Below the pieces are notes generated by a model, which saw nothing but the letters and a program-made list of their open reading frames with translations, was not told where the DNA came from and did not search any database. Below, in pieces: positions 7,013 through 56,000 of a stretch of DNA of 64,000 bases. Numbering within the stretch: position 1 is the stretch's first letter; every line of letters begins with the position of its first letter. The position numbers and the translations under genes are program-made. Source of the stretch: Macrostomum lignano (Eukaryota); NCBI GenBank assembly GCA_002269645.1, contig NIVC01000890.1, positions 310,001-374,000 of the forward strand, written 5' to 3'.

Positions 7013-7404
7013 GGGGCGCTGTACAACCCAAGTAAGCGTGTGTATGTTTAGTGTGTGCACCCTGGTGCACTTTAATAAGCGACATAACAAGTAACACAAC
7101 CGGCGAGAGGCATTGCTGCCCATTCTGCCGACTCCCCTGAGCAGGCACACAAGCGCGCGGATACGTACGCAGCCATACGCACAGGCACACACTCACACAG
7201 GAGTGTACAGCGGCCCTAACTTTTTTTATCGTTAGGCATGTACACCTCACTGTGCCTTGGAAGGTTGGCCCTCCAGGCCGCTAATTGCACGAGCAGAGCT
7301 GCAGCCGAGATTCCAATTCAGCCCCAAATTAATGTGACTGCACTTGGAATCGAGCCTGGGCCGCTGGCATATCAGAGCGCCGCGATAGACCATTATGCTC
7401 AGGA
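7013..7404 (-). mobile_element. tRNA-derived SINE, copy 1
   Basis: Minus-strand head with A-box-like CATAATGGT and B-box GGCTCGATTCC. The body is shared with 15500-15877 and 17191-17481. Confidence 0.75.
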
Positions 7405-9112: not shown

Positions 9113-12100
9113 TCACAGTGTTAGCCTGGCATCGTCAGACACCAGCACAGCGGCAGGCCCCAGTCTCCTGTTGCATTTGTCCAGCTCGCGCAGCACCCGA
9201 TCCAGCCGCCTGTCCAGAGCCGCGGAGTGCTCGAGCGTCAGGAGCGGCCCGCTCGACGGCAGGCTGGAGGCGCCAGACCGGCACAGGGCGGCCTGGGTGG
9301 CGGCGCCGAGCAGACCCTGGGATTGGATGGTGGGGGAGTTAGAGTGGACACATTAGTAGTCTACCTGTCCATTAGACTGGATAATCTACCTGTGCATTAG
9401 ACTGGATAATCTACCTGTCCATTAGACTGGATAATCTACCTGTCCGTTAGACTGGATAATCTTCCTGTCCATTAGACTGGATAATTTACCTGTCCACTAC
9501 TAGACTGGATAATCTACCTGTCCATTAGACTGGATAATCTACCTGTCCACTACTAGACTGGATAATCTACCTGTCCACTACAGACTGGATAATCTACCTG
9601 TCCATTAGACTGGATAATCTACCTGTCCACTACAGACTGGATAATCTACCAGTCCACTACTAGACTGGATAATCTACCTGTCCACTACTAGACTGGATAA
9701 TCTACCTGTCCATTAGACTGGATAATCTACCTGTCCGTTAGACTGGATAATCTTCCTGTCCATTAGACTGGATAATCTACCTGTCCACTACTAGACTGGA
9801 TAATCTACCTGTCCACTACTAGACTGGATAATCTACCTGTCCACTACAGACTGGATAATCTACCAGTCCACTACTAGACTGGATAATCTACCTGTCCACT
9901 ACTAGACTGGATAATCTACCTGTCCATTAGACTGGATAATCTACCTGTCCATTAGACTGGATAATCTACCTGTCCGTTAGACTGGATAATCTTCCTGTCC
10001 ATTAGACTGGATAATCTACCTGTCCACTACTAGACTGGATAATCTACCTGTCCACTACTAGACTGGATAATCTACCTGTCCACTACTAGACTGGATAATC
10101 TACCTGTCCACTACAGAATGGATAATCTACCTGTCCACTACTAGACTGGATAATCTACCTGTCCACTACTAGACTGGATAATCTACCTGTCCACTACAGA
10201 ATGGATAATCTACCTGTCCACTACTAGACTGGATAATCTACCTGTCCACTACTAGACTGGATAATCTACCTGACCACTACAGACTGGATAATCTACCAGT
10301 CCACTACTAGACTGGATAATCTACCTGTCCACTACTAGACTGGATAATCTACGTGTCCACTACTAGATTGGATAATCTACCTGTCCACTACTAAACTGGA
10401 CAATCTACCTGTCCACTACTAGACTGGATAATCTACCTGTCCACTACTAGACTGGATAATCTACCTGTCCACTACTAGACTGGATAATCTACGTGTCCAC
10501 TACTAGACTGGATAATCTACCTGTCCATTAGACTGGATAATCTACCTGTCCATTAGACTGGATAATCTACCTGTCCACTACTAGACTGGATAGTCTACCT
10601 GTCCACTACTAGACTGGATAATCTACCTGTCCACTACAGAATGGATAATCTACCAGTCCACTACTAGACTGGATAATCTACCTGTCCACTACTAGACTGG
10701 ATAATCTACCTGTCCACTACAGAATGGATAATCTACCAGTCCACTACTAGACTGGATAATCTACCTGTCCACTACTAGATTGGATAATCTACCTGTCCAT
10801 TAGACTGGATAATCTACCTGTCCATTAGACTGGATAATCTACCTGTCCATTAGACTGGATAATCTACCTGTCCACTACAGAATGGATAATCTACCTGTCC
10901 ACTACTAGACTGGATAATCTACGTGTCCACTACTAGATTGGATAATCTACCTGTCCACTACTAAACTGGACAATCTACCTGTCCACTACTAGACTGGATA
11001 ATCTACGTGTCCACTAGAGACTGGATAATCTACCTGTCCACTACTAGACTGGATAATCTACCTGTCCATTAGACTGGATAATCTACCTGTCCATTAGACT
11101 GGATAATCTACCTGTCCATTAGACTGGATAATGTACCTGTCCACTACAGACTGGATAATCTACCTGTCCACTACTAGACTGGATAATGTACCTGTCCACT
11201 ACAGACTGGATAATCTACCTGTCAACTACTAGACTGCCAGACTGAATAATCTACCTGTCCACTACAGACTGGATAATCTACCTGACCACTAGACTGGATG
11301 GATAATCCACCTGTCCATCAGTCAATGCAGTTCCAAATCAAGCACTCATCTCACACCCAAGCCCACGTGGATTAAATTCCTCATTCCCAAGTCTCACCTG
11401 CAGCGCCAGCAACCTGCTATTGGTGCTGGTCCGCAGCCTACAGCACTGCTGCAGAGGCGCCAGAATGCTGAGCTCATCGTGATACGGATTCCCCAAGCCT
11501 TTGCCATTGTCCAGCGTGACAACCAGCTGCTGTCCGCCAATACCGGCCGCTGTCTCAAACTCGTGCCTATCAGCGTTGCCCAATAGAAAGTCTAATATCG
11601 AGGTGTCAATCAGATCAAGCAGAACGCCAGGACCCAACCGACTTAATAGCTGTGAGTTGCAGGGATTCTCGCCCAGTTGCCAAGCCGCCTTGGCATCGTT
11701 CGAGGCGTAGTTCCTGGCCCAGGGGTGCCTGTGCCTGGAAATCACGTGTTCGGGTCGGGATTGTTTGTACTTTTTTTAGTACCGTACTTTAAAGTTGCGA
11801 CAGTTAAAGTTCGCGTCATCTCCCTACGGACATTTGGCGCCATCGCCCTCCACAGACATTTGGCGCCATTGCCCTCCCCCCAGATATTTGGCGCCATAGC
11901 CTCCCTCCAGATATTTGGCGCCATAGCCTCCCTCCAGATATTTTGCGCCATAGCCTCCCTCCAGATATTTTGCGCCATCGCCCATCCCAAGACATTTGGC
12001 GCCATTTCCCCCTCAAGACATTTGCCGCCAGCCAACTCCCCCAAAGATTTGGCGCCATAGCCCCCTCCAGATATTTGGCGCCATCGCCCATCCCAAGACA

Positions 12101-15100
12101 TTTGGCGCCATTTCCCCCTCAAGACATTTGCCGCCAACTCCCCCAAAGATTTGGCGCCATAGCCCCCTCCAGATATTTGGCGCCATCGCCCATCCCAAGA
12201 CATTTGGCGCCATTTCCCCCTCAAGACATTTGCCGCCAACTCCAAAGATTTGGCGCCATAGCCTCCCTCCAGATATTTGGCGCCATTTTCCCCCTCAAGA
12301 CATTTGCCGCCAATTCCCCCAAAGATTTGGCGCCATCGCCCATCCCAAGACATTTGGCGCCATTTCCCCTCAAGACATTTGCCGCCAACTCCCCTAAGAT
12401 TTGGCGCCATCGCCCCCCTCCAGATATTTGGCGCCATCGCCCATCCCAAGACATTTGGCGCCATTTCCCCCTCAAGACATTTGCCGCCAACTCCCCCAGA
12501 TATTTGGCGCCATCGCCCCCCTCCAGATATTTGGCGCCATCGCCCATCCCAAGACATTTGGCGCCATTTCCCCTCAAGACATTTGCCGCCAACTCCCCCT
12601 AAGATTTGGCGCCATCGCCCCCCTCCAGATATTTAGCGCCATTTCCCCCCTCAAGACATTTGCCGCCAACTCCCCAAAGATCGTCGATTTGGCGTCATTG
12701 CCCCACCCCAAAAGTTTGGCGCCATCACCCCCAGACCAGATTCAAGAAATTTGGCGCCACCAACCTTTTCAGAGCCAGTCGATGCGGCAGCATCAGAACG
12801 GCGACGCCTTCAAGAACTTCGTCAGGGCCGGCGCAGACCCCGGTGCGTCGGCCAGTGCAGTAGCGACAGACGCCCCACAGACAGAGCCGGTTGTCGCTCA
12901 GGCGACGATAGAAAGTCTCTCTGAGGCGAGGCGTGGCCGCCAGCGACGCTGCGGTCAGGTTTAGCAGCCGAGGCGACGCCACGGGACCGCGGTGGAAGCC
13001 CAGAAGGCGGCCAAGGTGGTAGCCAACGACCTCGGCATTGTCTCTGCAGGGGGGCGGGCGGGCTTTGAGGGTGACCTGACGATCCTGAACGTAACCTGAC
13101 AATCCTGAGGGCAACCTGAAGATTCTGAGGGTAAACTGAAGATCCTGAGGGCAACCTGAAGATCCTGAGGGTAAACTGAAGATCCTGAGGGCAACCTGAA
13201 GATCCTGAGGGTAAACTGAAGATCCTGAGGGTAAACTGAAGATCCTGAGGGTAACCTGACGATCCTGAAGGGTAACCTGACAATATTGAGGGTAACCTGA
13301 CAATTCTGAGGGTAATCTGACAGTTCTGAGGGTAACCTGAAAATTATGGGGTAACCTGACAATATTGAGGGTAACCTGACAATTCTGAGGGTAATCTGAC
13401 AGTTCTGAGGGTAACCTGACAATTCTGAGGGTAACCTGACAATTCTGAGGGTAATCTGACAGTTCTGAGGGTAACCTGACAATTCTGAGGTAACCTGACA
13501 ATTCTGAGGGTAACCTGACAATTCTGAGGGTAACCTGACAATTCTGAGGGTAACCTGACAATTCTGAGGGTAACCTGACAATTCTGAGGGTAACCTGACA
13601 GTTCTGAGGGTAACCTGACAATTCTGAGGGTAACCTGACAATTCTGAGGTAACCTGACAATTCTGAGGGTAACCTGACAATTCTGAGGGTAACCTGACAA
13701 TTCTGAGAGTAACCTGACAATTCTGAGGGTAACCTGACAATTCTGAGGGTAACCTGACAGTTCTGAGGGTAACCTGACGATTTTAATGGAATCTGAGTGT
13801 CATATGTAAGTCTAAGAAGTCAGCAGGGTGTCTAGACCTCAAAAACAACTAAGAATCCAAAGACTTTTAGGACACAAACATTGCTTAGAATTCAATAAGG
13901 TGTCAGATCTCAACCCAAGCTCAAGACAATGATGATGCCAGCTCTAGAAAAAGCACCCCTTTATCACGCACCTGTCCCTGCCGGCCACAACGCTCCCAGT
14001 CATCACCCGATCGCGGTCGTAGACGCGTGGCTTAAAAACCACAGATGCGCCACCGGTTCCAGCATCCAGTTGGAGTAGCAGCTTCATCTGACTGCCAGCT
14101 GGAAACTCTGAGACCAACGAGACGGCAGCTTGGCCTGTCAGCCGTTCCAGCTGAGATAGAATTCGCTGACTGGCGTTGCTAGGCAACAAGCGACGCTCTT
14201 TGTTGTTAGCGGCGAACGAACTCTGGGAAAACTGGGGTGTTCCAGTTTATGGGTGAGACTACTGTAGCTTAATTAAGTGGCGCCAAGGAGAGTCTTCTAG
14301 TGGCGCCAATTTGAGTCTTCTAGTGGCGCCAAGTTGAGTCCTCTAGTGGCGCCAAGGTGAGTCCTATAGTGGCGCTAAGTTGGGTCTTATAGTGACGCCA
14401 AAGTTTCTTAAAGTGGCGTCAAGTTGAGTCTTATAGTGGCGCCAAAGTTTCTTATAGTGGCGCCAAGTTGAGTCATCTAATGGCGCCAAAGTTTCTTAAA
14501 GTGGCGCTAAGTTGAGTATTCTAGTGGCGCCAAGGTGAGTCCTATAGTGGCGATAAGGTAGGTCTTACAGTGGCGCCAAGTTGTGTCTTATATTGGCGCC
14601 AAAGTTTCTTTAAGTGGCGCTAAGGTGAGCCTTATAGTGACGCCAAGTTGAGTCTTCTAGTCGCGCTAAGGTGGGTCTTATAGTGGCGCCAAGTTGTGTC
14701 TTATAGTGGCGCCAAAGTTTCTTAAAGTGGCGCCAATGTGAGTCTTATAGTGGCGCCAAGGTGGGTCTTATAGTGGCGCCAAGTTGAGTCATCTAGTGGC
14801 GCCAAAGTTTCCTAAAGTGGCGCTAAGTTGAGTCTTCTAGTGGCGCCAAGGTGAGTCCTATAGTGGCGCTAAGGTAGGTCTTACAGTGGCGCCAAGTTGT
14901 GTCTTATAGTGACGCCAAAGTTTCCTAAAGTGGCGCCAAGTTGAGTCATCTAGTGGCGCCAAAGTTTCCTAAAGTGGCGCTAAGTTGAGTATTCTAGTGG
15001 CGCCAAGGTGAGTCCTATAGTGGCGATAAGGTAGGTCTTACAGTGGCGCCAAGTTGTGTCTTATATTGGCGCCAAAGTTTCTTTAAGTGGCGCTAAGGTG

Positions 15101-16389
15101 AGCCTTATAGTGACGCCAAGTTGAGTCTTCTAGTGGCGCCAAGGTGGGTCTTATAGTGGCGCCAAAGTTTCTTAGTGGCGCCAAGGTGAGTCTTATAGTG
15201 GCGCCAAGGTGGGTCTTATAGTGGCGCCAAAGTTTCTTAAAGTGGCGCTAAGTTGAGTCTTCTAGTGGCGCCAAGGTGAGTCCTATAGTGGCGCTAAGGT
15301 AGGTCTTACAGTGGCGCCAAGTTGTGTCTTATAGTGGCGCCAAAGTTTCTTTAAGTGGCGCCAAGGTGGGTCTTCAAGTGGCACTAAAGTGTCTTATAGT
15401 GGCGTCCAGGTGAGACTTACGGAGGGTTGAATTATGATAGGAACCATTTCTTTGAAAAATCCTTGAAGGCCGACCAATTAGGCGTCCTAATTTAGTCGTC
15501 ATTGCAGTCAATATAGATAGGCGCTCTGATGTGCCAGCGGCCCAGGCTCGATTCCAATTTGCAGTCACATTAATTTGGGCTAAATTGGAATCTCGGCTTG
15601 GCTCTGCTCGTGCAATTAACGACTAGTTTGAGGGCCAACCCCAAGACACAGTGAAGTGTACATGCCTAACGATAAATAAAGTTAAAGCCTCTGTACACTT
15701 CTGTGTGAGTGTGTGCCTGTGCGTATGACTGCGTACGTATCCGCGCGCTTGTGTGCCTGCTCAGGGGAGTCGGCGGAATGGGCAGTAATGCCTCTCGCTG
15801 GTTGTGTGACAATGTCGCTTATTAAAGTGCACCAGGGTGCGCTCATACACACGCTCATACAGCATGTACAGCAGCCCAAACTTTCTAATCGTCAGGCAAG
15901 AGTCAGACTCATTTACCATGCAAAGTGAGACCTCACCATAGCAACATAGCTATCGTGCAGTCCAGCCTCCAGAGCAAATCCTTTATTAAAGTTACTACTA
16001 TTAGTAGTAGTAGCGTAGAGCTCCGCAGGCGGCCAGCCGGCATCCAGCAGATCCCGGATGCGCAGCTCCTGGTCGCTGTTAGCCGGCCGGAAATCCGGCA
16101 GCCCCTCGTGGCCCCGGTGCTCATACAACCGATTGGACTGCAGTCGCCAAGCAATATGAGCAGACTGGCCTAGACTATGCGATTCGCGATCGTGCTTAGC
16201 AACTAAACTGGCGTCGTTAGCAACCGAGGCGGGCAGTTGACTCAAGTTGAGCACAGTCAGACAGGCGAAGACCAATAGCGCGGCCAATGCGTAAGCCAAT
16301 AAGCGGCGATTGAAGCCGGAGATGCGGCGTCTCGGAGGCTGGAGATGTCGAAGATGACAGATAACTGTTTGAGGAAACCGAGCTCCAAG
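9113..16389 (-). CDS. FAM20B: FAM20B-type glycosaminoglycan xylosylkinase (Golgi secretory-pathway kinase); exons 16389-15937, 14222-13972, 13043-12765, 11734-11398, 9316-9113
   Basis: All four junctions are GT-AG with consistent phases (0,2,2,0). Motifs GSQMKLLL, VVFKPR, AGRDR-DNAE, CRYC, RHRHPW, catalytic NADRH, LDNGK, SILAPLQQCC and ALDRRL; N-terminal type II TM segment RRLLAYALAALLVFACLTVL. No in-frame ATG in the first exon (see findings). Confidence 0.9.
9353..11310. repeat. 25-28-bp minisatellite (AGACTGGATAATCTACCTGTCCACTACT), about 70 copies, filling FAM20B intron 4
   Basis: Direct tandem units. Confidence 0.97.
11830..12760. repeat. Complex minisatellite built on a TTTGGCGCCAT core, filling FAM20B intron 3
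   Basis: Dozens of GGCGCC-core units with a higher-order period of about 100 bp. Confidence 0.93.
13067..13780. repeat. 20-bp minisatellite (GAGGGTAACCTGACAATTCT), about 35 copies, FAM20B intron 2
   Basis: Direct tandem units. Confidence 0.95.
14275..15410. repeat. 22-23-bp minisatellite (TAGTGGCGCCAAGTTGAGTCTTC), FAM20B intron 1
   Basis: Direct tandem units with repeated higher-order blocks. Confidence 0.95.
15500..15877 (+). mobile_element. tRNA-derived SINE, copy 2
   Basis: B-box GGCTCGATTCC at 15545-15555. Reverse-complement homolog of 7013-7404. Confidence 0.75.
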
Positions 16390-17190
16390 CTGTAAAATCT
16401 GAGCTACTTTAACCTAGAAAAGTAAACTAGAGTAGTTTTTTACGAGCGTAATTAATTTATCAGGTAGCTACAATGGACACAATTTTTTAATAAACAGATA
16501 CGAGGGGCCAGAAGACTTTATGGACCTCCTCTGGATAGCTCCCTTTTGCCATTACAAAGAATGGCACTAAGATTTCGAGATAGGAAAAAGCTTGACTTAG
16601 TCATTTGAAGGTCAACTACTTGCTTATTGAAGTTTGACATAACTAACCGATGCCAATTTAGCTTAACTTGCAGGTGCTAAGGGGAGCGGCTAATGCGCTT
16701 CAGACCCACTAAACAATAACCATTCTTTAGTGTTACATAGTTCAGAACTAAGTACGTATAAACAATTGAATTTTAGAAGTTGTTATTAAAACTACCAACA
16801 AATTGGCGGCTAGTGGGCTGGTGATGATAACGGAAAAACAAACAAGGAAATCTTTCGACAAGCACTCGACATTCCCAATGTCATCGCCCACGGTTGCTAA
16901 CCCGGTTGTGCTTGGATATTATCGGAATAGAAATCTAAACAAATCACTTGATTATAGAAACTGCCACTTAGCCTAATAACATTTGACACTCCAACCTGCA
17001 CCTTCCCTATATTCTAGACCTAGACAGAGAGTGAATGGGAGGGGTGTAGGATTCAGGGTATATCTGATGGTTAATCAGACATTGCATCTGTCATCGTAGA
17101 CTATAGCCTACATCAAGACATCCGGGAAGTTCTTGCGCTTACGAATTATAATTCAGACATAGGCCTATCTGTAATATCTGCTATGTTCAA

Positions 17191-17481
17191 GCGACATTGT
17201 CACACAACCGGCGAGAGGCATTCCTGCCCACTCTGCCGACTCCCCTGAGCAGGCACACAAGCGCGCGGATACGTACGCAGTCATACGCACAGGCACACAC
17301 TCACAGGAGTGCACAGCGGTCCTAACTTTATTTATCGTTAGGCACGTACACTTCACTGCGCCTTGGGGGTTGGCCCTCAAGACTGTTAATTGCACGAGAA
17401 GAGCCAAGCCGAGATTCCAATTTAGCCCGAAATTAATGTGACTGCACTTGGAATCGAGCCTGGGATGCTGGCACATCAGAG
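17191..17481 (-). mobile_element. tRNA-derived SINE, copy 3 (truncated at both ends)
   Basis: Near-identical to the interior of copy 1. Confidence 0.75.
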
Positions 17482-17921
17482 ACTACGCCCCCATCGACAT
17501 GTCTACCCTACCCTTGATCTACCCTAACCTAGACACACACTATTGATACAAACAACCCAGCTGAAATTTCATGCTCTGAATGTTCAACTAGAAATCAGAT
17601 ACTTACAATAAATACATCTAAATAAGGAGCTGTTGCGAAGCCTAAAAATGACTAATAATTAAAATTGTAAAACAAAGACAAGAAAAAAGTCAGACTGCTA
17701 TGCAATAATTAGTTTTTTTGTTTCCAAAATTTTGCTTAACACACGAGCCAGAGCCATTGAGTTGTTAGTTTTCTTTTATTTGGAGTTGTTGGAGAACAAC
17801 AAACCAGAAAAACAGGATTTATGGAATTGTTATTTAGAACGGGCTCCTTCAGACTTATTGCACAAGGTCAGATCACGAAGCTCTTGTCCTCCATAGTTAG
17901 CTGACCCGGTTAGCTCAGCCT

Positions 17922-19988
17922 TCAGAACACCATAGCATGCGGCCGCTGCCCAGACTTGATGCTGAACAAAGATCGCAGATAAGAGCGCAGCATCGGGCCA
18001 TCACCGCTGGCCTTGATCGCGCCCATCAGCGCCTTGTCAACGGCTGCCTGATCTTCCCGACGCTCAGCCGACACAGCGTAGGCGGCGTCCGACTTGGCAA
18101 AGATGTCGGCGCTGCCGCCAGCCGAGGCGGCCGACTTCTTAGCCGAACGCTGGCGACGGAAATAGGCGTCGTTAAGTCGCTCGGGCAGAGCGACCTTGCT
18201 GATGTCGATGCGAGTTTTAGTGCCGATTACGTAGCGTTGACTGACGCGGCGGAGAGGGCAGCCGTTAAGCTTGCGGGGTCCCGTGACCAGCAGCAGGCCG
18301 CTCTCGAGCTGCTTGAGCAGCACAACGCGCTTGCCCTTGTGCCGGCCAGCTAGCAGGATTAGGACGGCGCCAGGCGCCAGGTTGGAGCGAATACGGCGCA
18401 CGTGTTTCTTGAAGGTCTTCTTCGGGCGTAGCTGAACCTTGCGGCTGGCCACCTGAGTGGGCAGCGACTTCGGCTGCAAATCAGTGGGGGCGACAGGATT
18501 TGTGTTTGGGGTGAGAGGATTAGTGTTTGGGGTGAGAGGATTAGTGTTTGGGGTGAGAGGATTAGTCTTTGGGGTGAGAGGATTAGTGTTTGGGGTAACA
18601 GGATTAGTGCTTGGGGTTAGAGGATTACTGTTTGGGGTGAGAGGATTAGTCTTTGGTGTAACAGGATTAGTGTTTAAATGACAGGATTAGTTTTTGGGGT
18701 GAGAGGATTAGTGTTTGGGGTGAGAGGATTAGTGTTTGGGGTGAGAGGATTAGTCTTTGGTGTAACAGGATTAGTGTTTAAATGACAGGATTAGTTTTTG
18801 GGGTGAGAGGATTAGTGTTTGGGGTGAGAGGATTAGTCTTTGGTGTAACAGGATTAGTGTTTAAATGACAGGATTAGTTTTTGGGGTGAGAGGATTAGTG
18901 TTTGAGGTGAGAGGATTACTGTTTGGGGTGAGAGGATTAGTCTTTGGTGTAACAGGATTAGTGTTTAAATGACAGGATTAGTTTTTGGGGTGAGAGGATT
19001 AGTGTTTGGGGTGAGAGGATTAGTGTTTGGGGTGAGAGGATTAGTCTTTGGTGTAACAGGATTAGTGTTTAAATGACAGGATTAGTTTTTGGGGTGAGAG
19101 GATTAGTGTTTGAGGTGAGAGGATTACTGTTTGGGGTGAGAGGATTAGTCTTTGGTGTAACAGGATTAGTGTTTAAATGACAGGATTAGTTTTTGGGGTG
19201 AGAGGATTAGTGTTTGGGGTGAGAGGATTAGTCTTTGGTGTAACAGGATTAGTGTTTAAATGACAGGATTAGTTTTTGGGGTGAGAGGATTAGTGTTTGA
19301 GGTGAGAGGATTACTGTTTGGGGTGTGAGGATTAGTCTTTGGGGTAACAGGATTAGTGTTTAAATGACAGGATTAGTTTTTGGGGTGAGAGGATTAGTGT
19401 TTGGGGTGAGAGGATTAGTCTTTGGTGTAACAGGATTAGTTTTTGGGGTGAGAGGATTAGTGTTTGAGGTGAGAGGATTACTGTTTGGGGTGTGAGGATT
19501 AATCTTTGGGGTAACAGGATTAGTGTTTAAATGACAGGATTAGTTTTTGGGGTGAGAGGATTAGAGTCTGGGCGAGAGGATTAGTGTTTGGGGTGCAGGA
19601 TTAGTGTTTGGGGTGAGAGGATTAGAGTCTGGGGTGACAGAATTAGTCTTTAAGGGGACAAGCAGGGTGCCTGGCTTACGAGTAGAGGGGCTTAGGGTTG
19701 CTAAAAACTCTCATACTTCCCACTGCAGCCTGCAGTTCACACATACAAAGTACTCACCGTCTTCTTGTACACCTTCCTCTCTCCGCCATTCTTATCGCCG
19801 CCAATTTTCTTAACAACAAAAGCGGCGGCAGCGGCGGCTTTCTCGGCCGATTTCTTGGCCGGAGTCTTAACCTTCTTAACCTTGTAGGCGGCCTTGCGTT
19901 GGAAAATTCTGGCCCGAGAATATTTCATCAGCCTACTGGCGTTAATAGCCGAGTTCTTGGGCTTGTGGGGAGCGCTGCTCTTGGCCAT
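17922..19988 (-). CDS. RPL6: 60S ribosomal protein eL6; exons 19988-19758 and 18473-17922
   Basis: ILLAGRHKGKRVVLLKQLESGLLLVTGP and NGCPLRRVSQRYVIGT are eL6 hallmarks. Donor ACG|GTGAGT and acceptor TTTGCAG|CCG are both phase 0. Confidence 0.96.
18500..19640. repeat. 21-bp minisatellite (GGGTGAGAGGATTAGTGTTTG) filling the RPL6 intron
   Basis: Direct tandem units with higher-order variants. Confidence 0.95.
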
Positions 19989-21134
19989 TTGCTGCAATGT
20001 AGCATGGGTTAAACAGGTTTAGAAAATTAATTTTCGAATGCGTTACAGAGAGAAACTAAGATTTATAGCAAATATATAAGCGGAGGAAATAACCTCATAC
20101 AATAAGTGCAAAACAGCGAGTGTCACGAAAAAATGTTTGTTGCATGTAGCACAGGTAAAATAGGTAAGAAGTTACTTCAGACCAGGGATCCGGGATCGAC
20201 AAAGAAAGGAAGAGAAGAGAAAAGGGATAGAATAGATGAGAGAAGAGAGGGGAGGCGGGAAAGAGGAGAGAAGAGACGAGAGGGAGGGGAGAAAAGAGAG
20301 AGAAGGGAGAACAGAGAAAAATTAAAAAAAGGACATAAACCTTGAGCGGGCAGTTTCAAAGGACCGAGGGCCGGTTACGGTTAGAGAGGCTTATGCCCGC
20401 GGGCCGACCCCTGCTCTAGGTGACAAAATATCACGGCACAAGTGCTGTAGAGCCACTGAGTTGCATCTAAAGCGCAATTGCGTCACTTTATAAATCAGAA
20501 TCGCATTCTGCGTTTATAAAACAACGATATTTTGTCTACTCAAGTTCTCGTATTACGAGTAGAAAGTTAAGCGCTAAAACATCGACTCTTGGGACGACTT
20601 CTTTTTGCGACTCTTTAAGATTCTACAGCTCGCGTGATGCGCTTTGTGACTTTGAGTTTACAGTAAACACCAGTAAGTTTAAGGACAGCTGTTTTCCATT
20701 AATAAATAAACATTTGCTTAGACAAACAGTTTTTTCGTGCAAGAAAGAGAATGAATAGTTAATAGGTGTGTAAGCGTAAGGAAATTTATATTAGGTTAGC
20801 AATCCAAATAGCCAAGGAAGAACAACGTGAACTATAAAATGGATTGTGCAAGGAAGATAAGGAAAATAATTTTATCTAGATCAAATTCACGTACTTTGCC
20901 TTGCGGCTTTTTCTGCGCTTTAGGAGCCATTGGCGTATTTTACTAAACTGTATGTCTCAAACTTTACTCAATATAATATTATTATGGAAAATTATTGCAA
21001 GCTACTGCAAGTAGCAAGATGAGGGCACTGGCTGAAATACAAAAAATGCACCGAGTTTCTTATCAATCATTTGAACGCCAGCATAAAATGCTGATTAAAC
21101 TGATATAAATATATTATAAGCTGATTAACTGACA

Positions 21135-22495
21135 CTCTGGGAGGCTGGCCCAGCAACTGAGGATCCGGAAGGCTGCCCCAGCCACTGAGGATCTGGGGGG
21201 AGGCTGGCCCAGCAACTGAGGATCTGAGAGGCTGCCCCAGCAACTGAGGATCTGGGAGGCTGGCCCAGCAACTGAGGATCTGGAAGGCTGGTGCCCAGCA
21301 ACTGAGGATCTGGAAGGCTGGTGCCCAGCAACTGAGGATCTGGAAGGCTGGTGCCCAGCAACTGAGGATCTGGGAGGCTGGTGCCCAGCAACTGAGGATC
21401 TGGGAGGCTGGGCCAGCAAATGAGGATCTGGGAGGCTGGGCCAGCAACTGAGAATCTGGGAGGCTGGGCCAGCAAATGAGGATCTGGGAGGCTGGGCCAG
21501 CAACTGAGGATCTGGGAGGCTGGCCCAGCAACTGAGGATCAGGGTGGCTGGCCCAGCAACCGAGGATCTGGGAGGCTGGCCCAGCAACTGAGGATCAGGG
21601 TGGCTGGCCCAGCAACTGAGGATCTGGGAGGCTGGGCCAGCAAATGAGGATCTGGGAGGCTGGGCCAGCAACTGAGGATTTGGAAGGCTGCCCCAGCCAC
21701 TGAGGATCTGGGAGGCTGGCCCAGCAACCGAGGATCTGGAAGGCTGGCCCAGCAACCGAGGATCTGGGAGGCTGGGCCAGCAACTGAGGATCTGGGAGGC
21801 TGGCCCAGCAACCGAGGATCTGGGAGGCTGGGCCAGCAAATGAGGATCTGGGAGGCTGGCCCAGCAACTGAGGATCTGGGAGGCTGGCCCAGCAAATGAG
21901 GATCTGGGAGGCTGGTCCAGCAAATGAGGATCTGGGAGGCTGGCCCAGCAACCGAGGATCTGGGAGGCTGGCCCAGCAACTGAGGATCAGGGTGGCTGGC
22001 CCAGCAACTGAGGATCTGGGAGGCTGGGCCAGCAAATGAGGATCTGGGAGGCTGGGCCAGCAACTGAGGATTTGGAAGGCTGCCCCAGCCACTGAGGATC
22101 TGGGAGGCTGGCCCAGCAACCGAGGATCTGGAAGGCTGGCCCAGCAACCGAGGATCTGGGAGGCTGGGCCAGCAACTGAGGATCTGGGAGGCTGGCCCAG
22201 CAACCGAGGATCTGGAAGGCTGGCCCAGCAACCGAGGATCTGGGAGGCTGGGCCAGCAACTGAGGATCTGGGAGGCTGGCCCAGCAACCGAGGATCTGGG
22301 AGGCTGGGCCAGCAAATGAGGATCTGGGAGGCTGGCCCAGCAACTGAGGATCTGGGAGGCTGGCCCAGCAAATGAGGATCTGGGAGGCTGGTCCAGCAAA
22401 TGAGGATCTGGGAGGCTGGCCCAGCAACTGAGGATCTGGGAGGCTGGCCCAGCAAATGAGGATCTGGGAGGCTGGTCCAGCAACTGAGGATCTGA
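21135..22495. repeat. 28-bp minisatellite (CTGAGGATCTGGGAGGCTGGCCCAGCAA) downstream of MRPL45
   Basis: Direct tandem units, including a duplicated block of about 390 bp. Confidence 0.95.
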
Positions 22496-22760
22496 GAGTT
22501 ATTTACAATAAACTTACGATAAGAAATAAAATTATAAATAAAAAGGAATACGGAAAATCATTTTGTTAACAGATATTAATAGCAAGGCAAATTTCGGTTT
22601 ACTTTCTGAAAATTTAAGCTACGCCAATAACATTACTTCAATACTAATTGATATCATATTCGATATAGATACTAAAAGCATTAAATTGAAATAGGATTTT
22701 CAGATTTAAAGTCGAATATTTTAAACAAACAAAAAACAACTGCACCAAATCGATTGCATA

Positions 22761-24985
22761 TCAAGCAGCCTGATCGTAGTAACGAAATGTGGGCAACAGG
22801 GGCAGCCGGTTATCCTTAGACTGGTAGCGCCCGTGCAGCAGCCACTGGTGAAACTCGGCAGTTGCGTTACATTCGTACACGGGGAATTCCACCAGCTCGC
22901 GCGGAGTCTCCCACGAGCCGAGGATCAGCCGGCCGAACCTGTCAAATATTGCCCGGCGCTGTCTGAGGTGAACGCGCACAGTGGCTTGAACAAATTGCAG
23001 ATCTCGACCGATTTCTTGTTTAGCAAATTTCATTATCTTCGGCTCGCTGACTACTGACAGTAGTTCGAAGCGGTAGGACCGGTTTAGAATGTCGTCCGTC
23101 ATGCACTGGAAAAATTGATGGGAGAAAATGGTGGGAAGCTGGGATCAACTGAGGATCTGGGAGGCTGAGTGGCAAAGCCACTGAGGATTTGGGAGGCTGG
23201 TCCTGCCCAGCAACTGAGAATCTGTGAGGCTGGTCCAGAAACTGAGGATCTGGGAGGCTGGCTCAGCAACTGAGGATCTGGTAGGCTGGTCCAGAAACTG
23301 AGGATCTGGGAGGCTGGCCCAGCAACTGAGGATCTGTGAGGCTGGCCCAGCAACTGAGGATCTGTGAGGCTGGTGGACTAGCAACTGAGGATCTGGGAGG
23401 CTGGCCCAGCAACTGAGGATCTGTGAGGCTGGTGGACTAGCAACTGAGGATCTGGGAGGCTGGCCCAGAAACTGAGGATCTGGGAGGCTGGTCCAGCAAC
23501 TGAGGATCTGGGAGGCTGGCCCAGCAACTGAGGATCTGAGGCTGGTCCAGAAACTGAGGATCTGGGAGGCTGGCTCAGCAACTGAGGATCTGGTAGGCTG
23601 GTCCAGAAACTGAGGATCTAGGAGGCTGGTCCAGAAACTGAGGATCTGGGAGGCTGGCTCAGCAACTGAGGATCTGGTAGGCTGGCTCAGCAACTGAGGA
23701 TATAGGAGGCTGGTGGCCCAGCAACTGAGGATATGGGAGGCTGGCCCAGCAACTGAGAATCTGGAAGGCTGGCTCAGCAACTGAGGATCTGGTAGGTTGG
23801 CCCAGCAGCTGAGGATCTGGGAGGCTGGCACAGAAATTGAGGATCTGGGAGGCTGACTCGGCAACTGAGGATCTGGGAGGCTGGCACAGAAATTGAGGAT
23901 CTGGGAGGCTGGCTCGGCAACTGAGGATCTGGGAGGCTGGCCCAGCCACTGAGGATCTGGGAGGCTGGCCCAGCAACTGAGGATCTGGGAGGCTGGCTTA
24001 GCAACTGAGGATCTGGGAGGCTGGCCCAGCAACCGAGGATCTGGGAGGCTGGCCCAGCAACTGAGGATCTGGGAGGCTGGCTTAGCAACTGAGGATCTGG
24101 GAGGCTGGCCCAGCAACTGAGGATCTGGGAGGCTGGCCCAGCAACTGAGGATCTGGGAGGCTGGCTCAGCAATTGTGGATCTGTGAGGCTGACCCGGCAA
24201 ATGAGGATCTGGGAGGCTGGCCCGGCAAATGAGGATCTGGGAGGCTGGCCCGGCAAATAAGGATTTGGGAGGTTTAGCAAAGCTCTTAAGCAAAAATTAA
24301 CAAGAAAGCATTGAATCATCTATTTATACCTTGAATCCTCGCGGTGTCAAATGATTTTCAAGTAGATTTTCGGCATTCTTATTAAGACTGAAATGTGTTG
24401 AGATTGAAATCAGTTCAAGATGAATAACACAGAAGTTTTAGCAAAAAAGGAAGCAATACGGCAGCAGAGCCGATATACTCACTCCTGCAGCTGCTCATTA
24501 ACAGACACATAGTCATCCTGCAACAGGCGGGCCAGCTCCTCCTTGCCACCGCTAGGAATCAGATCATTATTCTTCAATAGATTCTCCGCCTCTCTATGCG
24601 AACTTTTCGGCTTCTTCTGGTCCCAGAGTCTGGCGGTTTTATTCACCAGACTGCGCAGGCCGCTGCCCTCTACAGCGTCAGCTTCTTCCATTGGTTCGAA
24701 GATCCGATCGGATGACCGATGGAACAGGCTGCCGTGCAGGAATGGCAGAGTCTGTATCTGACTGTGCGACTGCATCAGTTTAATTCGATCTGGCATACTG
24801 CGCTGCCGGCCGAATTCATCTTCAAACCAAACGCTGGGCCGATTGCGCAGCTCCGGCCCGAATTCGTGCACTCTTAATTGGCGAATTATTTTAAAGCGCG
24901 GATGCCATGGCTTGTGGCGAGCGTAGCGGACTGGCTGGAAACCTAGCAGGATTCGGCCGCAGCCAATACAGGAGGAGGCTGAGGC
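22761..24985 (-). CDS. MRPL45: Mitochondrial ribosomal protein mL45 (Tim44-like domain); exons 24985-24483, 24387-24330, 23105-22761
   Basis: WHPRFK, IFEP, KKPKS and QATVRVHLRQRRAIFDRFGRLILGS match mL45. A 58-nt middle exon absent from the ORF track (D-LNKNAENLLENHLTPRGFK) restores the phases (2 then 0) with GT-AG sites. No ATG in exon 1. Confidence 0.85.
23150..24270. repeat. Same 28-bp minisatellite family, filling MRPL45 intron 2
   Basis: Same unit as 21135-22495. Confidence 0.95.
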
Positions 24986-27435
24986 CTGCAAGTTAAACGA
25001 ACAGGTAGCTTGGTCAGGTATCAAAAAAGGTATTTATTATAATAGGTGTATATTTAGAGATTTCATTTAGTTGCTATCTTGGCAATTTTACATCTCAAGG
25101 TTTTTAATTCATTGAATTCCAATAATTCAGGACAAAAACTAGATTGACTAGAGGCCAATTAAACTAAAAACTATTGGACTACAGTCTTAAAATTGCATTT
25201 GAAAAAGGTAATAGGTTTTTACCTCAGAAGTATATGTTGCACTAACTTTATTTTGTAAGTATTTTATAAGCCAAGTTATTAATGCATATACTATCAATGC
25301 TTTTGTTTTCAATAAATGTATGCAATTTATTGTATAAATACACTATTACATTGAAGACTTTCTGGTACTAAAATGCAAAATTGCATCCAAGGTCTAATTT
25401 CAAGATGCAATTTGAAGTCACATTGTTATATAACTCCCCTATTCATGAATGCATAACACCCAGCTAAGCTAGCCAATCTGACTTAGCCAAGGTAAATTGC
25501 AAAAATGCCCACCCAAAAATTACTACTATTAAACAAAACAATGAAAATTTTTGTTTAAATTATTTAAATCATTGTTATAAATTATTTAAATCATTGTTTA
25601 AATTATTAAACAATGAAATGTGGAAGCAGATGGATATTACCAATTTTTGTCCAATTTTTATATTGGATAAAGCTGCTCACCAAATATTGGGTACATTGTC
25701 TAATTAAATAAAGGTCAATATCAGCAGTAAGTATTAGATATTTATTTGATTTGCCTATGCATTTTGTCCATCTTAGATATCTTCAAGGTCAAAATTTATT
25801 TGAACCAAACAAAATGTATCAGCAACTCAAATAATTAACTAATACTTAATGTTGATATTGACCTTTATTTATCTACTCTTCATTAAGCGAGCCACTTTAC
25901 CTGATTTCTACATTGTCTAATTATTTTAGTTTTTTTGTCCAAATCTCAATCAATTTCTTGTCCATTTCCAATCTAGATAAGAAATGATAAGAAAAATGTA
26001 TAATCTTTCATCTAGTCTATCTAAATTGCAGTAAAAAATTGAATGCAAGGCATTTGAAACAAACAAAAAATGGCTTGCAAGGTAAAATGCACAAATTTAA
26101 GCTATACAAATGCTTTCCCTTTTATTTGCTCTTGTTTGAGGAAGATGTGCTATAGCAGCTTTGGCAAATGTAAGATGACATTAAAATCAGCAGTTATCTT
26201 AGCACTTATCTATTCTATTGAGGGTTTATTGTGATCTAGATTATAATAGAAGGCAACATTAGATGTCAAAATCAATAGACAAATGAGATAGAAGTGCATG
26301 ATATTCCTATTTACTTTCTTACATCTGCAAATGTTTCAAATATTACTAAGCTTAAAAGTGAGAATGAGTTGTAACATATGTTGTACAACCTACTTTACTC
26401 AAGATGATCAGCATATAGACTTATATCCTAGTAAACTATAGTCTCCTAGAGGCCATTCCATGGAAAATTCCAGCATGCAAGAGCCTTTGGTATCCAGTGT
26501 ATGGCATGTATTGCATATAAGACAAGAAGACTAAGCAAATTTAGACTAAACAAAGTGTAAATACATAATTTTTTTGCAATGATTTAACAAATTTTAAAGA
26601 AGTGGCAAACCTATTTTTGCAAAATTTTGAAGCTTAACATTTTATTTTTTTATAAATATAATACAAAGATATAAGTATGAATTTAAGTCAGTAAATTAAA
26701 AGTTCATATTCTAATAGACTTTTTGTTTTGATTGATGTTTCATAAAATCATCACTCAGTTTCAAAATATACTCTTTCTTGCTGTTTAGAGGTTAACCCAT
26801 AGCCTGGATCATGCTGGGTGCTCACCCAAAGAAAAATTGAATATAGAAAAATGCATGCCAAAATGTAGTATATGCCTATTCTAAAAAATATACTGGTCAT
26901 GCATTTTTGCAGCTTACCTTGGCTGGGCCCTTTGCCAGCCAGCTGGATCGACTTGGTGTTACATCTGGATGATCAATATAAGGACAAAACAAGCTTAATT
27001 ATGGTGTAAGGATTAAAATTCTATATGTGGCATATTTTTATTTTGAGAATAAAAGAAAAACTATAATTAGTTATATTTTTTAAAGGACTAATGCAAAATA
27101 ATCTACAAGAAAAATGCTAAAAATGACATATAAAGAATGAAAATCCATTGAATAGTTCAAAAGTTATGTTAATTATAACTTGGAAAATCAGACCTTTTGA
27201 GCAAAAAATGATCACATTGCTTTATGGGAAAATTGCATTATGAAAGTATAAAAAAATATGACACTAAAAGTACTTTTTTATTACTTGACCAAAATTCAAA
27301 AGTGAGGTGTCTTTTTACTCATACAAATAAGATCTATTATACTACATAGTTAAAAATAAGAAATTTAGAAGTTTATAAAAATCTCACTGGACCTCCTACT
27401 ACCATGTGACTCTGGTCTCTGGGTCATTTGCAAAA

Positions 27436-31316: not shown

Positions 31317-33387
31317 TCACCGCCTTCGTAAGATGTTGAATAAATGAACAGAAAACGACACAATACAAAGTAAATTCTTGCAAAAACTCAGAAAACGGAA
31401 TTCATCAGCGAGATGCCAAAGCTGCACCAGCGTGTTCATGGCGTGGTGCGGCGAATTCACCACGGGCGACACAAACATTCTTATTGTGTCGAGATGGAAA
31501 CAAAAATAAAAGCAGACTGAAACAGCCAGCAGAATCCAGACAATATGGTCGAAAATCGGCATTTTTTGTTGCGCTCCGACTTGTAAGTGTGGGCTGCTCT
31601 GCCTCTGCATCATCCGTGTAAAATGAACATCGTCTGTTGTCTGCAATCGCTTTTCGTCCTTAAGTTTCCTGGCTCTCTCCAGACAGAAATTCACGTGGTT
31701 CTGACTGTCGCTGAACTCAGTCAGTGTGCGCAGCTCCTCAAAATCCTCGCTGCCAGGACTGTCCTGAAGCTCCTGGAACCAGCTGTCAGTTTGTGACTTC
31801 CTGGAGTCGGCAAGAAGCTCAGCTCCGAGACTCCACCAGAGGCAGCGGAAGTTCACGTACAGGTGGGTCGGTCCTCGCTCCGGTCTCTTGACGCAGATCA
31901 GGGATCTGGAGAACTCGGGCAGAAACTCCATCTCCGGCAGGTTGTGGTGAATGAAGCAGAACCGCCACAGCCAGTCCGATGTGATTTCGTCAAGGTGGCG
32001 CACATTTTCAGGCGACAGAGATCTGAGAACCTTGAGCTGAATTTGTCGCTGCAGAAGCTGTTTGGCTGTGCTCTCATCTTTGGATTTCAAGTGAGCCATG
32101 GCCATGAGACACAGCTTGGCCATCATACAGCAGTCTGGCAGTCGCTCTGCTTGACTCAGCAAGGCTTCTTTGTCCCAAATTTCAGAGCGCAGCTCACCGA
32201 GAATTTCGAACACGATGCAGTAGATGTGAGCGAACTTGTCTTGCTTAACTTCCTCCTCATCTGGAGGCACTGTCAGAGGCAGCAGGGCGAACGGGTGGAA
32301 GTGGAAGACGTCAGATTCCAACGGACTCACGGTCTCGAGAAGGTGCCGTTCTACAATCTCGATGTTGTTCTTAATCTCAATCAGTTTTTCAAGGATTTCA
32401 ACTTTTGATTTCAAAAAGGGGCCGCCGATTCCAGCATTTTTGACATATAAAAATGCGCCAGGAATGAAGAAGTGCGGCATACAAATGTCAGTACAGCCTT
32501 TGGCTTCCATCAGTTCAATCATCGTGTTTAAAGCCTTTGCTAGCAGGCTCCTGAGGTTCTCCCGACTCCACTTGTCGCTAGGAAAAGTATGCAGAATGAA
32601 GAATATCAAAGTTCTAGCATGGTATGTCTTAAGCCCGGAGAGATGATACACTCTTGGTAAAAGCCTCTTAAAGATGAACTTGATGAGCACGAATAGCTGA
32701 CCCTGGGTCTCGCTCAGGCCTCTCATGATCTTCTTCTCATGAAAGCTGAAACTCACTCTCATCTCGTTGTCTGAGTTAGGTCTGGTTGCAGTCACCAGGT
32801 GCACCTCCATCGCTAATGCACCTGCTGGAAGCAGCTTCTGAACTCTCTTTGGGTGAATGAGACTGCCACAGCACTGGTACGCATGGCATGTGTCTTCAGC
32901 AGATCGAACTCCGCAAGCGTCCGCTGCCACCGCCGGCTGGCTTCCTGGAACAGGAATTCCGGAGCGGTTTGCGAATCCAATTTTGTTATATTATTAGTTT
33001 ATTAGCTGATTAGCTACTTACCTGCAGGGGACTGTATCTGTGCGTGACCATCAATGATGCTTTGGTTTTAGCCTCACCACATCGGCAACTGCCCTCAAGA
33101 TGAAACACCAGCTGCATATTTTTGTCTTCATCTTCCTCTTGTGAGCCAACGATGACTGTCCAGTCAATGTCGGAGTCGGCAGCGGTCAGTCCATTCACCT
33201 GCTTCAGACTGTTGCCCCATCCGTCTGCGTAGCTGCCAGTCATGCTCCTGCCGTCTTTGGTGATGATGCCAGCCAGGGTCTCCAAAAAGTCAGCCAATCT
33301 CTGCTGCTGCTTGGCCCGCTCGCGAGTGAAGCCAGCGCTGCTGAGAATTCTGCTCAGACTTTCACCGCGCGTCAGGTTTCCGGGACT
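31317..33387 (-). CDS. cGAS-like receptor (Mab-21 nucleotidyltransferase) paralog 1; exons about 33387-33022 and 32944-31317; 1-nt frameshift near 33065; C-terminal hydrophobic segment
   Basis: TGSYADG...DSDIDW (GS and DxD), third acidic residue in EDTCHAY, and Mab-21 C-lobe motifs RVSFSFHEK, LIKFI, LKTYHAR and MPHFFIP. The start is uncertain because there is no ATG. Confidence 0.8.
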
Positions 33388-33959
33388 CTGTAGGATTTCG
33401 CTGTAGATAGGCCAGCAGTTGGAGGAAGAATTCGTGAGAGGTATTCAATACAGCATGCTCAGAGAACGGACTCATCAATGAGCTCAATGTAAATTAATCC
33501 CATGAGCCTAATCATAAAATATCATTCATAGTCATCGAACAGGAAAGACGTCGAAGAGCACTTCATCAAGACTAAGGCAAGTCAAAGACAATGATAAGCC
33601 TCACTCACTAAAATCCACAGGAAAAAACAAAATTTCACTCAAAGTCCCATGAAGTTCGTCAAGACTATGTTGCTTTGATACTTTGGTGCTGTGAGAGAAA
33701 AGTAAGACGCTACTTTGGATTAAAGACAGAAAAGTTGAGTACAGTGGTTTAGAAGTTTTAGCAAAATATTTTTAATGAACCGTTTGATCTCTTGGGGTTG
33801 TAAATTTTGCCAAATTGAATCTGGCAGTAAAGTGCCTATTATTGCCTATTGCCTATTCAGGTCTAAAGAAATAAAAGTGACTTCACAGAAAAAGAGGGAC
33901 TCATTGAAAAATATGGACTCCTCCACCCTTAATATCAAGAAATCGTCAAATCGAAATAC

Positions 33960-40170: not shown

Positions 40171-40192
40171 AAAACGGACAGGCCGGCCGTCA

Positions 40193-49110: not shown

Positions 49111-50845
49111 TTAGTCATCTCCATTTGCTAAAGTCAAGTGACATGTAGCACTGGACTCGGCACTCATATTTGCATTCAGCAACTCCGCTTTAAAACTTGC
49201 CCACAGACAGCGGAAATTGATGTGCAGGTAAGCTGCTCCTTTTACGGGTCGCTTCGTGCGAATTTGCAGTCTGGATAATTCGGGAAGGAATTCCATTTCC
49301 GGCTGGCCGTAATCGACAAAGCAGAATCTCCAAAGCCAGTCCTGCTTTATTTCCTTCATCTTTGCCACTTCCTCTGGGTTCAAACTCGTCAGAACTTCAT
49401 GGTTTTGTTCAGCACATAGGAGACTTCGAGCCTCGTCAATATTGTCAGACTTCAGGAAGCACATGACTTTGATGCAGAGTTTCGCAGATTTGCAGCTATC
49501 TGGAAGAGTCTCAACCAATCGGAGGACTTCTTCTTTTTCCCATTCATCAGAGTGGAGTTCTCGAATGCAGAAGAATACTAAGCTGTAGATCCGAGCGAAA
49601 ATGTCAAGACCCTCGAATTCTTCAGGCGGCACTGTCAGCGGCAGCAGTGTGAAAGGATGGAAATAGAATTTAGTAGACTCGAGAGGCTTCAAGAGCTTAG
49701 AGAGCTCAGTTTCCAAGACACCAGGATCATTAAACACATCCCAAAGTCGCTGAAGTACAGCTTGATTAGTTGCATCAAATGCACCTCCGGTAATTCCTGC
49801 GTTCTTGTAGTGCAAATACGAATCAGGCATGAAGAAGTGCTTCATAAAGGCTTCATCCGGGAGCTGTTCTCTATTCGTGATAACCGAAAGCAAAGCTTCT
49901 CTCAGCAGGCCCACCAAATTTTCCGGCTCCCAGTCCTGAGGTCGTTTTAATTTTCGCTCCAGCATGAAGAACAGGACGCTTCTCGCGTGATATGTCTTTA
50001 AACCAGTGGTTTTCCAAGTCTTTGGGAGCAGGCGCTTGAAGATGAACTTGATGAGCACAAAAAGCTGGCCTTGCACTGTGGTCAGCCTCCTCATTATCTC
50101 CTTCTCTCTGAAGCTGAAGCTGAGCCGCATTTCGTTGCTGCTAGTCAGTCCTGTGGCTGTCACCAGGTGAACTGGCTCATCACGGGCATTCGGCAACAGC
50201 ACGCGAACTCTGTCTTGTCCGTAGCCACTGCAGCAGGCGTAGGCGTGGCAGATGTCCTGGGCTGGACGGAGCCCGCACGAGCTCGAAGCGCTGGCTGGCT
50301 GGCTGCCTGAAGTAAGAAAGATTTTGATTGCCGGATTATCCTAATTGATGATTTAGAGTGAACTGTGCTCTAACATCTATTCAGGAAAAAACTACTAAAA
50401 ATAAAATTCAAACCGTACCAGCAGGTCTCTTGGTTTCGGCATGACCGTCCCTGACTATTGACCGTTCCAGTTCCTCAGGTGTATCGTCGCATTTGCAGTG
50501 TCCCATTAGATGAAACGTCAGCTTCTTAAGATTCCTGGCCCTGTCCTCTTCCTCATCTCCCTCTTCCTTATCTTCCTCTTCCTCATCTTCCTCTTCCTCA
50601 TTCCAGTCCTTAATAGAAGGCCGAATTATGACTGTCCAATCAATGTCCGAGTCGGAAGCTGTTCGGCCGTTCACCTGCACTAGGCTGTTGCCCACTCCAT
50701 CAGAGTAGCTTCCCGTTAAATGCCAATCTTCCTTCGTGAGATCGCGGGCCAGTTTCTGGAGACAGTCTGCCATCTGCTGTAGTACCTTTGCTCTCTGCTC
50801 GGTGAATCCAGCGTCACATAGACTCTTGTGAAGCCTCAGACTCAT
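49111..50845 (-). CDS. cGAS-like receptor paralog 2; exons 50845-50419 and 50306-49111; frameshifted tail probably extends to 48872
   Basis: TGSYSDG...DSDIDW, QDICHAY, RLSFSFREK, LKTYHAR and MKHFFMP. Phase-1 GT-AG intron at the same position as in paralog 1. Confidence 0.85.
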
Positions 50846-54514: not shown

Positions 54515-54627
54515 CAGCTACCTCTAGCTTTAAAGTTTTAGAAGACTTTAGTAAATTTCCTGGTAGACTCTCATGAAGTTAAGGGTTTGAAGGATATGAA
54601 ATATTTGACAGCAAAAGTTTTTTAATG

Positions 54628-55194: not shown

Positions 55195-55204
55195 CCTCCC
55201 CTTC
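55195..55204 (-). other. Polypurine tract GAAGGGGAGG
   Basis: Abuts the 3' LTR on the minus strand. Confidence 0.85.

Positions 55205-55393: not shown

Positions 55394-56000
<607 letters not shown>

Follow-up and report, generated by a model that had tools for sequence, protein, structure and literature searches.

Introduction

In schistosomes, the AUG at the 3' end of the spliced leader (SL) reportedly acts as the initiator methionine, as Cheng, Cohen, Ndegwa and Davis are said to have demonstrated in 2006 with cDNAs and in vivo translation tests. In Schistosoma mansoni, 28% of trans-spliced mRNAs have the SL AUG in their reading frame, and more than 40 cDNAs need it. In Echinococcus granulosus, 143 of 187 SL clusters require the SL ATG as start codon to be full-length, and SL-ATG use is conserved across Neodermata (PMC3510090). 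ATG is the terminal triplet of every reported flatworm SL. Here we analyse a 64,000-nucleotide stretch of the genome of the free-living platyhelminth Macrostomum lignano (contig NIVC01000890.1, positions 310,001 to 374,000, hereafter the window) that contains three genes without a genomic start codon ahead of their N-terminal elements: MRPL45 (mL45), FAM20B and a putative Mab-21/cGAS-like gene, cGLR1. Judged from their sequence, the three are likely to represent SL-AUG-initiated mRNAs.

M. lignano possesses a single SL of 35 nucleotides, CGGTCTCTTACTGCGAAGACTCAATTTATTGCATG, which ends in ATG; its 3' end, ...TTTATTGCATG, precedes a GTAAG donor, and [T/C]TNCAG ranks first among the motifs at trans-splice acceptors (PMC8629364). 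The share of trans-spliced genes is put at 30%, with conserved genes enriched (PMC8629364), and in another study at 38.8% (PMC5730564). The authors regard the terminal SL ATG as the probable start codon (Ustyantsev & Berezikov 2021, PMC8629364; Wudarski et al. 2017, PMC5730564; Wiberg et al. 2023, PMC10468722). These papers have organism, SL and acceptor motif in common with the present case, and their pipelines trim the SL, leaving such genes as Met-less '5'-partial' proteins (A0A1I8G4R5, A0A1I8J845). Within the searched text of the literature no list or analysis of SL-ATG-dependent genes was found for Macrostomum, and the supplementary tables of the M. lignano papers hold no entry for MRPL45, FAM20B or RPL6, a ribosomal protein gene that also lies in the window.

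The locus resembles the Schistosoma system in its AUG-ending SL, in an AUG in frame with the body open reading frame (ORF) and in recipient mRNAs without another AUG before the conserved N-terminus. It differs in that the evidence consists of genomic sequence and the start points of gene models, and in that the species is free-living, belongs to an early-branching rhabditophoran lineage and has a different SL, of 35 nucleotides. The E. granulosus data come from a parasitic cestode, from expressed sequence tags and from a different gene set (PMC3510090), but offer a similar range of cases, with a second ATG within 5 codons in some clusters, comparable to RPL6 here, and strict SL-AUG dependence in others, comparable to MRPL45 and FAM20B. 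In nematodes, ascidians and euglenozoans, SL-contributed start codons create or extend ORFs, termed slORFs (slORFfinder, PMC9851317). Those starts are mostly near-cognate NUG codons inside the SL, detected by ribosome footprints, whereas the M. lignano SL provides a canonical AUG at its 3' end.

Candidate gene starts at SL-type acceptors

A preliminary description of the window, made from the sequence alone, had placed gene starts at 24985 (MRPL45) and 16389 (FAM20B), with a candidate at 33387 (cGLR1). Our analysis returned the same positions, all on the minus strand, and agrees with its account of MRPL45 and FAM20B as phase-0 exons with upstream in-frame stops and no early ATG, an account that applies likewise to cGLR1. 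The acceptors are TTGCAG (MRPL45), TTACAG (FAM20B) and CTACAG (cGLR1), each of which fits [T/C]TNCAG in phase 0. Listed in this order, the frame is open from the AG for 168, 158 and 125 codons, the upstream in-frame stops are found at codons -17, -9 and -20 and the first Met at codons 64, 151 and 49. No genomic AUG lies ahead of the indispensable element, be it the presequence of MRPL45, the signal anchor of FAM20B or the paralogue-conserved block of cGLR1. The GC content rises at the acceptors from 0.32 to 0.58, from 0.30 to 0.54 and from 0.46 to 0.60, respectively. The motif [T/C]TNCAG occurs in the window once per 337 nucleotides per strand. By a naive estimate, which disregards how the preliminary description chose the genes, chance would place 0.08-0.11 phase-0 copies per gene in the interval that runs from the upstream stop to the first indispensable residue; for the three genes together the value is about 1e-3. 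MRPL45 and FAM20B each contain one extra motif copy 51 nucleotides into the exon, both in phase 0.

The threefold motif match, the M. lignano SL ending in ATG and the N-terminal elements preceding the first Met support the earlier proposal of SL-AUG initiation. That proposal would have fallen in an organism without an AUG-ending SL, an objection that fails because the single published M. lignano SL ends in ATG. What is established here comprises the anatomy of the sequence, the identity of the organism and the point at which the MRPL45 gene models start; the SL and its acceptor motif are established in the literature. From the sequence we infer that the SL is spliced at these AGs in all three genes, with ribosomes initiating at its AUG. 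No SL RNA gene was found within the window, and Rfam returned no hits either. SL-containing reads are recognisable by ...CAATTTATTGCATG.

MRPL45

The MRPL45 junction reads ...aacTTGCAG/GCC TCA GCC (the slash marks the splice site here and below), with the first exon base at 24985. Exon 1 matches one protein cluster only, consisting of UniProt A0A1I8G4R5 and A0A1I8J845 from M. lignano, and A0A1I8G4R5 is encoded 100% by the window. Both models map to the locus at 100% without an upstream exon, and both start Met-less with 'ASASSC...' at the first codon past TTGCAG. The genomic frame remains open for 16 more codons upstream of the acceptor (IPFLIPDQATCSFNLQ), and therefore a longest-ORF call would start earlier while an ATG-seeking call would start at Met64. 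A model start exactly at the acceptor is what would be expected of a transcript whose 5' end, the SL, fails to align at the locus. SL-AUG initiation has strong indirect support in this gene, for which we regard it as very likely.

Within the Tim44-like domain, residues 157-253 of A0A1I8G4R5 match residues 165-265 of pig and human mL45 (E value 7e-12), collinear and offset by just 8 residues; a Pfam MBA1 match is weak and under the cut-off. The preliminary description had read an N-terminal peptide, (M)ASASSCIGCGRILLGFQPVRYARHK, as a plausible mitochondrial presequence. The peptide is the true translation of the DNA, and the first 40 residues, counted with the SL Met, are presequence-like in holding 8 lysine or arginine residues and 0 aspartate or glutamate residues. 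The 40 residues from the internal Met hold 6 aspartate or glutamate residues. Exon 1 ends at a non-consensus donor, GAC TAT/GTGTCT. The UniProt names of A0A1I8G4R5 and A0A1I8J845, 'L39' (39S ribosomal protein L39) and 'L50', are inconsistent, and solved mitoribosome chains lead to mL45. A 28-bp array at 21136-24272 flanks MRPL45 exon 2 on both sides.

FAM20B

The FAM20B junction reads ...tttTTACAG/CTT GGA GCT, with the first exon base at 16389. A basic RRR..NRR stretch is located ahead of the sole strongly hydrophobic segment of exon 1 (residues 31-49), which lies 100 codons before the first Met. A type II signal anchor is expected for a Golgi FAM20 kinase. The type II N-terminus that the preliminary description had anticipated on addition of one Met is thus borne out as a single predicted signal anchor, which a protein starting at Met151 would lose.

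The gene identity appears secure on sequence grounds. Pfam Fam20C matches at 6.6e-34, and three collinear matches connect the protein with residues 79-136, 222-330 and 350-391 of the Hydra glycosaminoglycan xylosylkinase (5xom, E value 2.7e-33). This enzyme is the best solved structure for FAM20B, with 118.6 bits compared to 96.7 bits for FAM20C, and is also ahead of FAM20A; the assignment among FAM20 members is made by match scores. The public model A0A1I8FRM0, which maps to the locus, connects exons 2-5 with the 3' part of exon 1, so exon 1 belongs to FAM20B. The model starts Met-less at exon 1 codon 63, without membrane anchor, and its micro-introns cut out the DFLxGNxDRH kinase motif and alter the C-terminus, faults that are probably a legacy of indel errors in an older assembly. 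An exhaustive HMMER search with exon 1 returned only the truncated A0A1I8FRM0 and three chance hits to repeat proteins, with no orthologous N-termini. The logic of the sequence gives good support to an SL-AUG start, and FAM20B is probably initiated in this way.

The FAM20B introns are full of minisatellites with 20-, 23-, 27- and 28-bp units. An interspersed repeat of about 290 bp, present in three copies of 90-91% identity (17189-17481, 15524-15820 and 7091-7377), has one copy in the RPL6-FAM20B spacer and an inverted one in FAM20B intron 1.

cGLR1 and its paralogue cGLR2

The cGLR1 junction reads ...cCTACAG/AGT CCC, with the first exon base at 33387 and no Met codon before codon 49. The phase-1 donor TGT G/GTGAGG (between 33078 and 33077) fits the acceptor TTCCAG/GA at 32946-32945 and yields a continuous ORF of 645 codons, so cGLR1 is not a decayed copy. 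A second donor, CAG/GTAAGT at 33022, looks strong but does not match the phase of the conserved acceptor, while GTGAGG at 33077 restores the frame. The Mab-21_C match lies just below the curated cut-off (7.8e-5, 23.2 bits compared to 24.1), matches to cGAS chains (E value 0.002) and to the cGLR1 structure 8gjy (E value 0.011) are weak, and a TGSY...SDIDW motif is visible in exon 1. The gene is accordingly described here as apparently Mab-21/cGAS-like; 'cGLR' is the label of the preliminary description.

The window contains a paralogue, cGLR2 (50845 to 49114, minus strand), which is 50% identical to cGLR1 and has its own ATG; cGLR1 has none in or around the corresponding position. Ahead of Met49, residues 18-48 of cGLR1 show roughly the same conservation with cGLR2 as the remaining protein, and the flanking non-coding and intergenic DNA does not align. 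Translation of cGLR1 must therefore begin upstream of residue 18. The phase-0 CTACAG at 33387 proposed earlier as the cGLR1 start is present, but the proposal had missed a second, out-of-frame CTACAG 13 nucleotides upstream. SL-AUG initiation is plausible but ambiguous for cGLR1, and we lean only slightly towards it. The tandem acceptors (33400 and 33387) could serve as an on/off choice for the full-length protein.

The stop codon of ANK1, the preceding gene, is located 575 nucleotides upstream of the cGLR1 acceptor. This spacing is under the 1-kb operon threshold applied to M. lignano and fits a trans-spliced downstream gene. That cGLR1 belongs to the upstream ankyrin gene as an internal exon is less likely, given that the ankyrin paralogues stop after the last repeat, that cGLR2 has its own ATG and that the intergenic regions are unrelated. 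A two-gene module is present twice on the minus strand (37776-31320, ANK1 and cGLR1; 54514-49114, ANK2 and cGLR2), each copy consisting of a protein of about 1000 amino acids with C-terminal ankyrin repeats followed within about 0.5 kb by a Mab-21/cGAS-like gene. The operon-like spacing suggests a functional pairing of the ankyrin protein with the cGAS-like enzyme.

Alternative explanations

Several observations weigh against SL-AUG initiation. The sole FAM20B model, A0A1I8FRM0, is 5'-truncated and error-prone and carries no information on the true 5' end, and a database of 5.8 billion clusters contains no public protein that begins at the acceptor and matches the N-terminal exons of FAM20B or cGLR1. 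In cGLR1, the upstream CTACAG (exon start at 33400) has the better pyrimidine tract and would shift the SL AUG into another frame, where it would open a 13-codon upstream ORF. The SL sequence places a U at position -3 of its AUG, a weak Kozak context in which leaky scanning is possible. Finally, the intron donor GTGTCT of MRPL45 is non-consensus, so a scan for consensus donors could overlook a true upstream exon.

The last point bears on the alternative that survives best, although we consider it improbable: the AGs could be ordinary cis 3' splice sites, with the ATG provided by a short upstream exon that is unrecognisable by sequence. The preliminary description had named such an exon as evidence against its proposal, and the sequence allows this to be assessed in part. 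Neither MRPL45 gene model has an upstream exon. A scan for phase-0 exons of the form ATG.../GT[AG]AG, from each acceptor back to the preceding gene, gave 0 candidates for FAM20B and cGLR1 and 2 for MRPL45, compared to 2.6 expected and neither coding-like. M. lignano does use non-consensus donors, as in MRPL45, and when any GT or GT[AG] donor is allowed, phase-0 ATG micro-exons number 14-24 for FAM20B, 2-4 for cGLR1 and 37-59 for MRPL45; these counts, however, are at or below shuffle expectation and no candidate is coding-like. A very short 5' exon could also miss alignment in public models, as the SL would. Such an exon fits poorly with the AT-rich upstream DNA and the sharp GC step at the AG, and the acceptors conform to the trans-splice motif in an organism in which 30-39% of genes are trans-spliced.

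Translation could also begin at the first downstream genomic AUG (codon 64, 151 or 49), with the preceding open frame as 5' untranslated region, which we think very improbable. Scanning ribosomes could pass the SL AUG in its weak context, and use of the cGLR1 acceptor 13 nucleotides upstream would create a short upstream ORF that forces downstream initiation. FAM20B, however, would lose its sole signal anchor and all of exon 1, and mL45 would be shorter by 63 residues that run collinear with the mammalian precursor and would begin with an acidic sequence that is not presequence-like. The conservation of cGLR1 residues 18-48 at the level of the rest of the protein, next to unalignable non-coding flanks, is likewise at odds with an untranslated region, as is a frame open from the AG over 48-150 codons in all three genes.

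Decaying duplicates, assembly errors or non-AUG initiation are just as improbable as causes of the missing start codons: many genes of M. lignano, a hidden polyploid, are duplicated, signs of assembly or model error are seen in the public FAM20B model and near-cognate in-frame codons such as CUG and AUU are present, but two separate UniProt MRPL45 entries have the identical Met-less start, every exon of the three genes is an intact ORF, the 645-codon ORF of cGLR1 with its 50% identity to the paralogue implies long-term constraint, and an identical phase-0 acceptor geometry in three independent genes is unlike random decay.

RPL6 and other features of the window

The other cellular genes of the window (RPL6, ANK1, ANK2 and cGLR2) carry their own ATG. 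RPL6, identified by Pfam Ribosomal_L6e (1.4e-34), combines this with an SL-type acceptor (Table 1). A trans-spliced RPL6 mRNA would read SL-AUG CAA AUG..., corresponding to MQMAKSS, and the gene looks like a transitional form between genes that have their own start and those that depend on the SL.

Table 1. Positions of gene starts, exons and associated signals in the window
Feature	Position	Strand	Remarks
In-frame TAA upstream of MRPL45 exon 1	25034..25036	-	codon -17; no ATG from stop to acceptor
Putative MRPL45 trans-splice acceptor TTGCAG	24986..24991	-	fits motif; sole motif copy within 400 nucleotides upstream
MRPL45 exon 1, 159 codons	24509..24985	-	residues 1-159 of A0A1I8G4R5; no ATG before codon 64
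MRPL45 exon 2 and TGA stop	22761..23105	-	coding 23105-22764; residues 160-273 of A0A1I8G4R5 exactly
RPL6 start TTGCAG/CAA ATG	19986..19997	-	exon start 19991; SL-type acceptor 3 nucleotides before own ATG, phase 0
In-frame TAG upstream of FAM20B exon 1	16414..16416	-	codon -9
Putative FAM20B trans-splice acceptor TTACAG	16390..16395	-	motif match, phase 0
FAM20B exon 1, 151 codons	15937..16389	-	sole ATG is the last codon; donor ATG/GTGAGG at 15937/15936
Predicted FAM20B signal-anchor (type II transmembrane) segment LLAYALAALLVFACLTVLN	16246..16302	-	top Kyte-Doolittle 19-mer, 2.31
FAM20B exons 2-5	9113..14222	-	14222-13971, about 13043-12827, about 11735-11398, 9316-9116 and stop; by homology
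In-frame TGA upstream of cGLR1 exon 1	33445..33447	-	codon -20
Alternative cGLR1 acceptor CTACAG	33401..33406	-	13 nucleotides upstream, exon start 33400, phase 2
Candidate cGLR1 trans-splice acceptor CTACAG	33388..33393	-	phase 0, motif match
cGLR1 exon 1, 103 codons and 1 nucleotide	33078..33387	-	GS...DID nucleotidyltransferase motif after Met49
cGLR1 exon 2 (Mab-21/cGAS-like C-terminal domain) and stop	31317..32944	-	Pfam, cGAS chains, cGLR2 identity
cGLR2 genome-encoded ATG	50843..50845	-	11 codons before conserved AGFT motif

Minisatellites occupy nearly every intron and intergenic spacer between 876 and 24272, each spacer having its own, with units of 17-33 bp in up to 110 copies. The sole cellular gene candidate on the plus strand (44887-47156) comprises ORFs of 391 and 335 amino acids and has its own ATG (MNSEKK...); it contains several hydrophobic segments and no Pfam match. 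A long terminal repeat retrotransposon at 54624-63553 (minus strand) consists of long gag/pol ORFs surrounded by terminal direct repeats of about 570 bp (54624-55194 and 62998-63553) that are 97% identical. A second retroelement remnant at 39400-43400 (plus strand) has a GC content of 66-69% and reverse-transcriptase/integrase-like stretches broken across frames.

Discussion

If the three genes are expressed as we propose, their pre-mRNAs would carry an AT-rich outron, with MRPL45 transcribed from its own promoter and cGLR1, possibly also FAM20B, transcribed downstream in a polycistron. The 35-nucleotide SL exon, ending in ...UUGCAUG, would be joined by the spliceosome to the [T/C]TNCAG acceptor, and the mature mRNA would have the terminal SL AUG as its first AUG, immediately followed in phase 0 by the body ORF. 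Initiation at this codon would give mL45 a basic, acid-free presequence (M-ASASSC...), FAM20B a type II signal anchor (M-LGARFP...RRR- followed by the transmembrane segment) and cGLR1 a conserved N-terminal stretch (M-SPGNL...) preceding the GS/DxD core. Without trans-splicing, none of the three ORFs would have a usable AUG before the presequence, anchor or conserved block.

SL-AUG initiation is already known from parasitic flatworms, and MRPL45, FAM20B and cGLR1 would add further ordinary examples of a mechanism that is not new. The main value of the finding is in annotation. SL trimming leaves Met-less proteins (A0A1I8G4R5, A0A1I8J845) or a truncation (A0A1I8FRM0, which has no FAM20B anchor), and such models corrupt both the prediction of targeting signals and that of orthology. 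With the SL Met added, mL45 regains its mitochondrial presequence and FAM20B its type II anchor. If a sizeable class of M. lignano genes started in this way, public Macrostomum proteomes would systematically mislabel them as 5'-partial.

The biological value is smaller and consists in extending a parasitic-flatworm mechanism to a free-living model species with working transgenesis, in which it is cleanly testable. The paralogues cGLR1, without ATG, and cGLR2, with ATG, form a pair in which the hand-over of the start codon to the SL can be studied. For M. lignano as a whole, the chances are about even that a sizeable class of conserved genes, some of them with an organelle-targeting signal that begins at the SL Met, has lost the genomic start codon, making trans-splicing obligatory for the protein. 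In that case the cGLR pair and RPL6 would represent snapshots of the passage from genomic AUG to SL AUG and, because Macrostomum branches early, SL-AUG initiation would date back to the ancestor of rhabditophoran flatworms rather than being a specialisation of the parasitic Neodermata.

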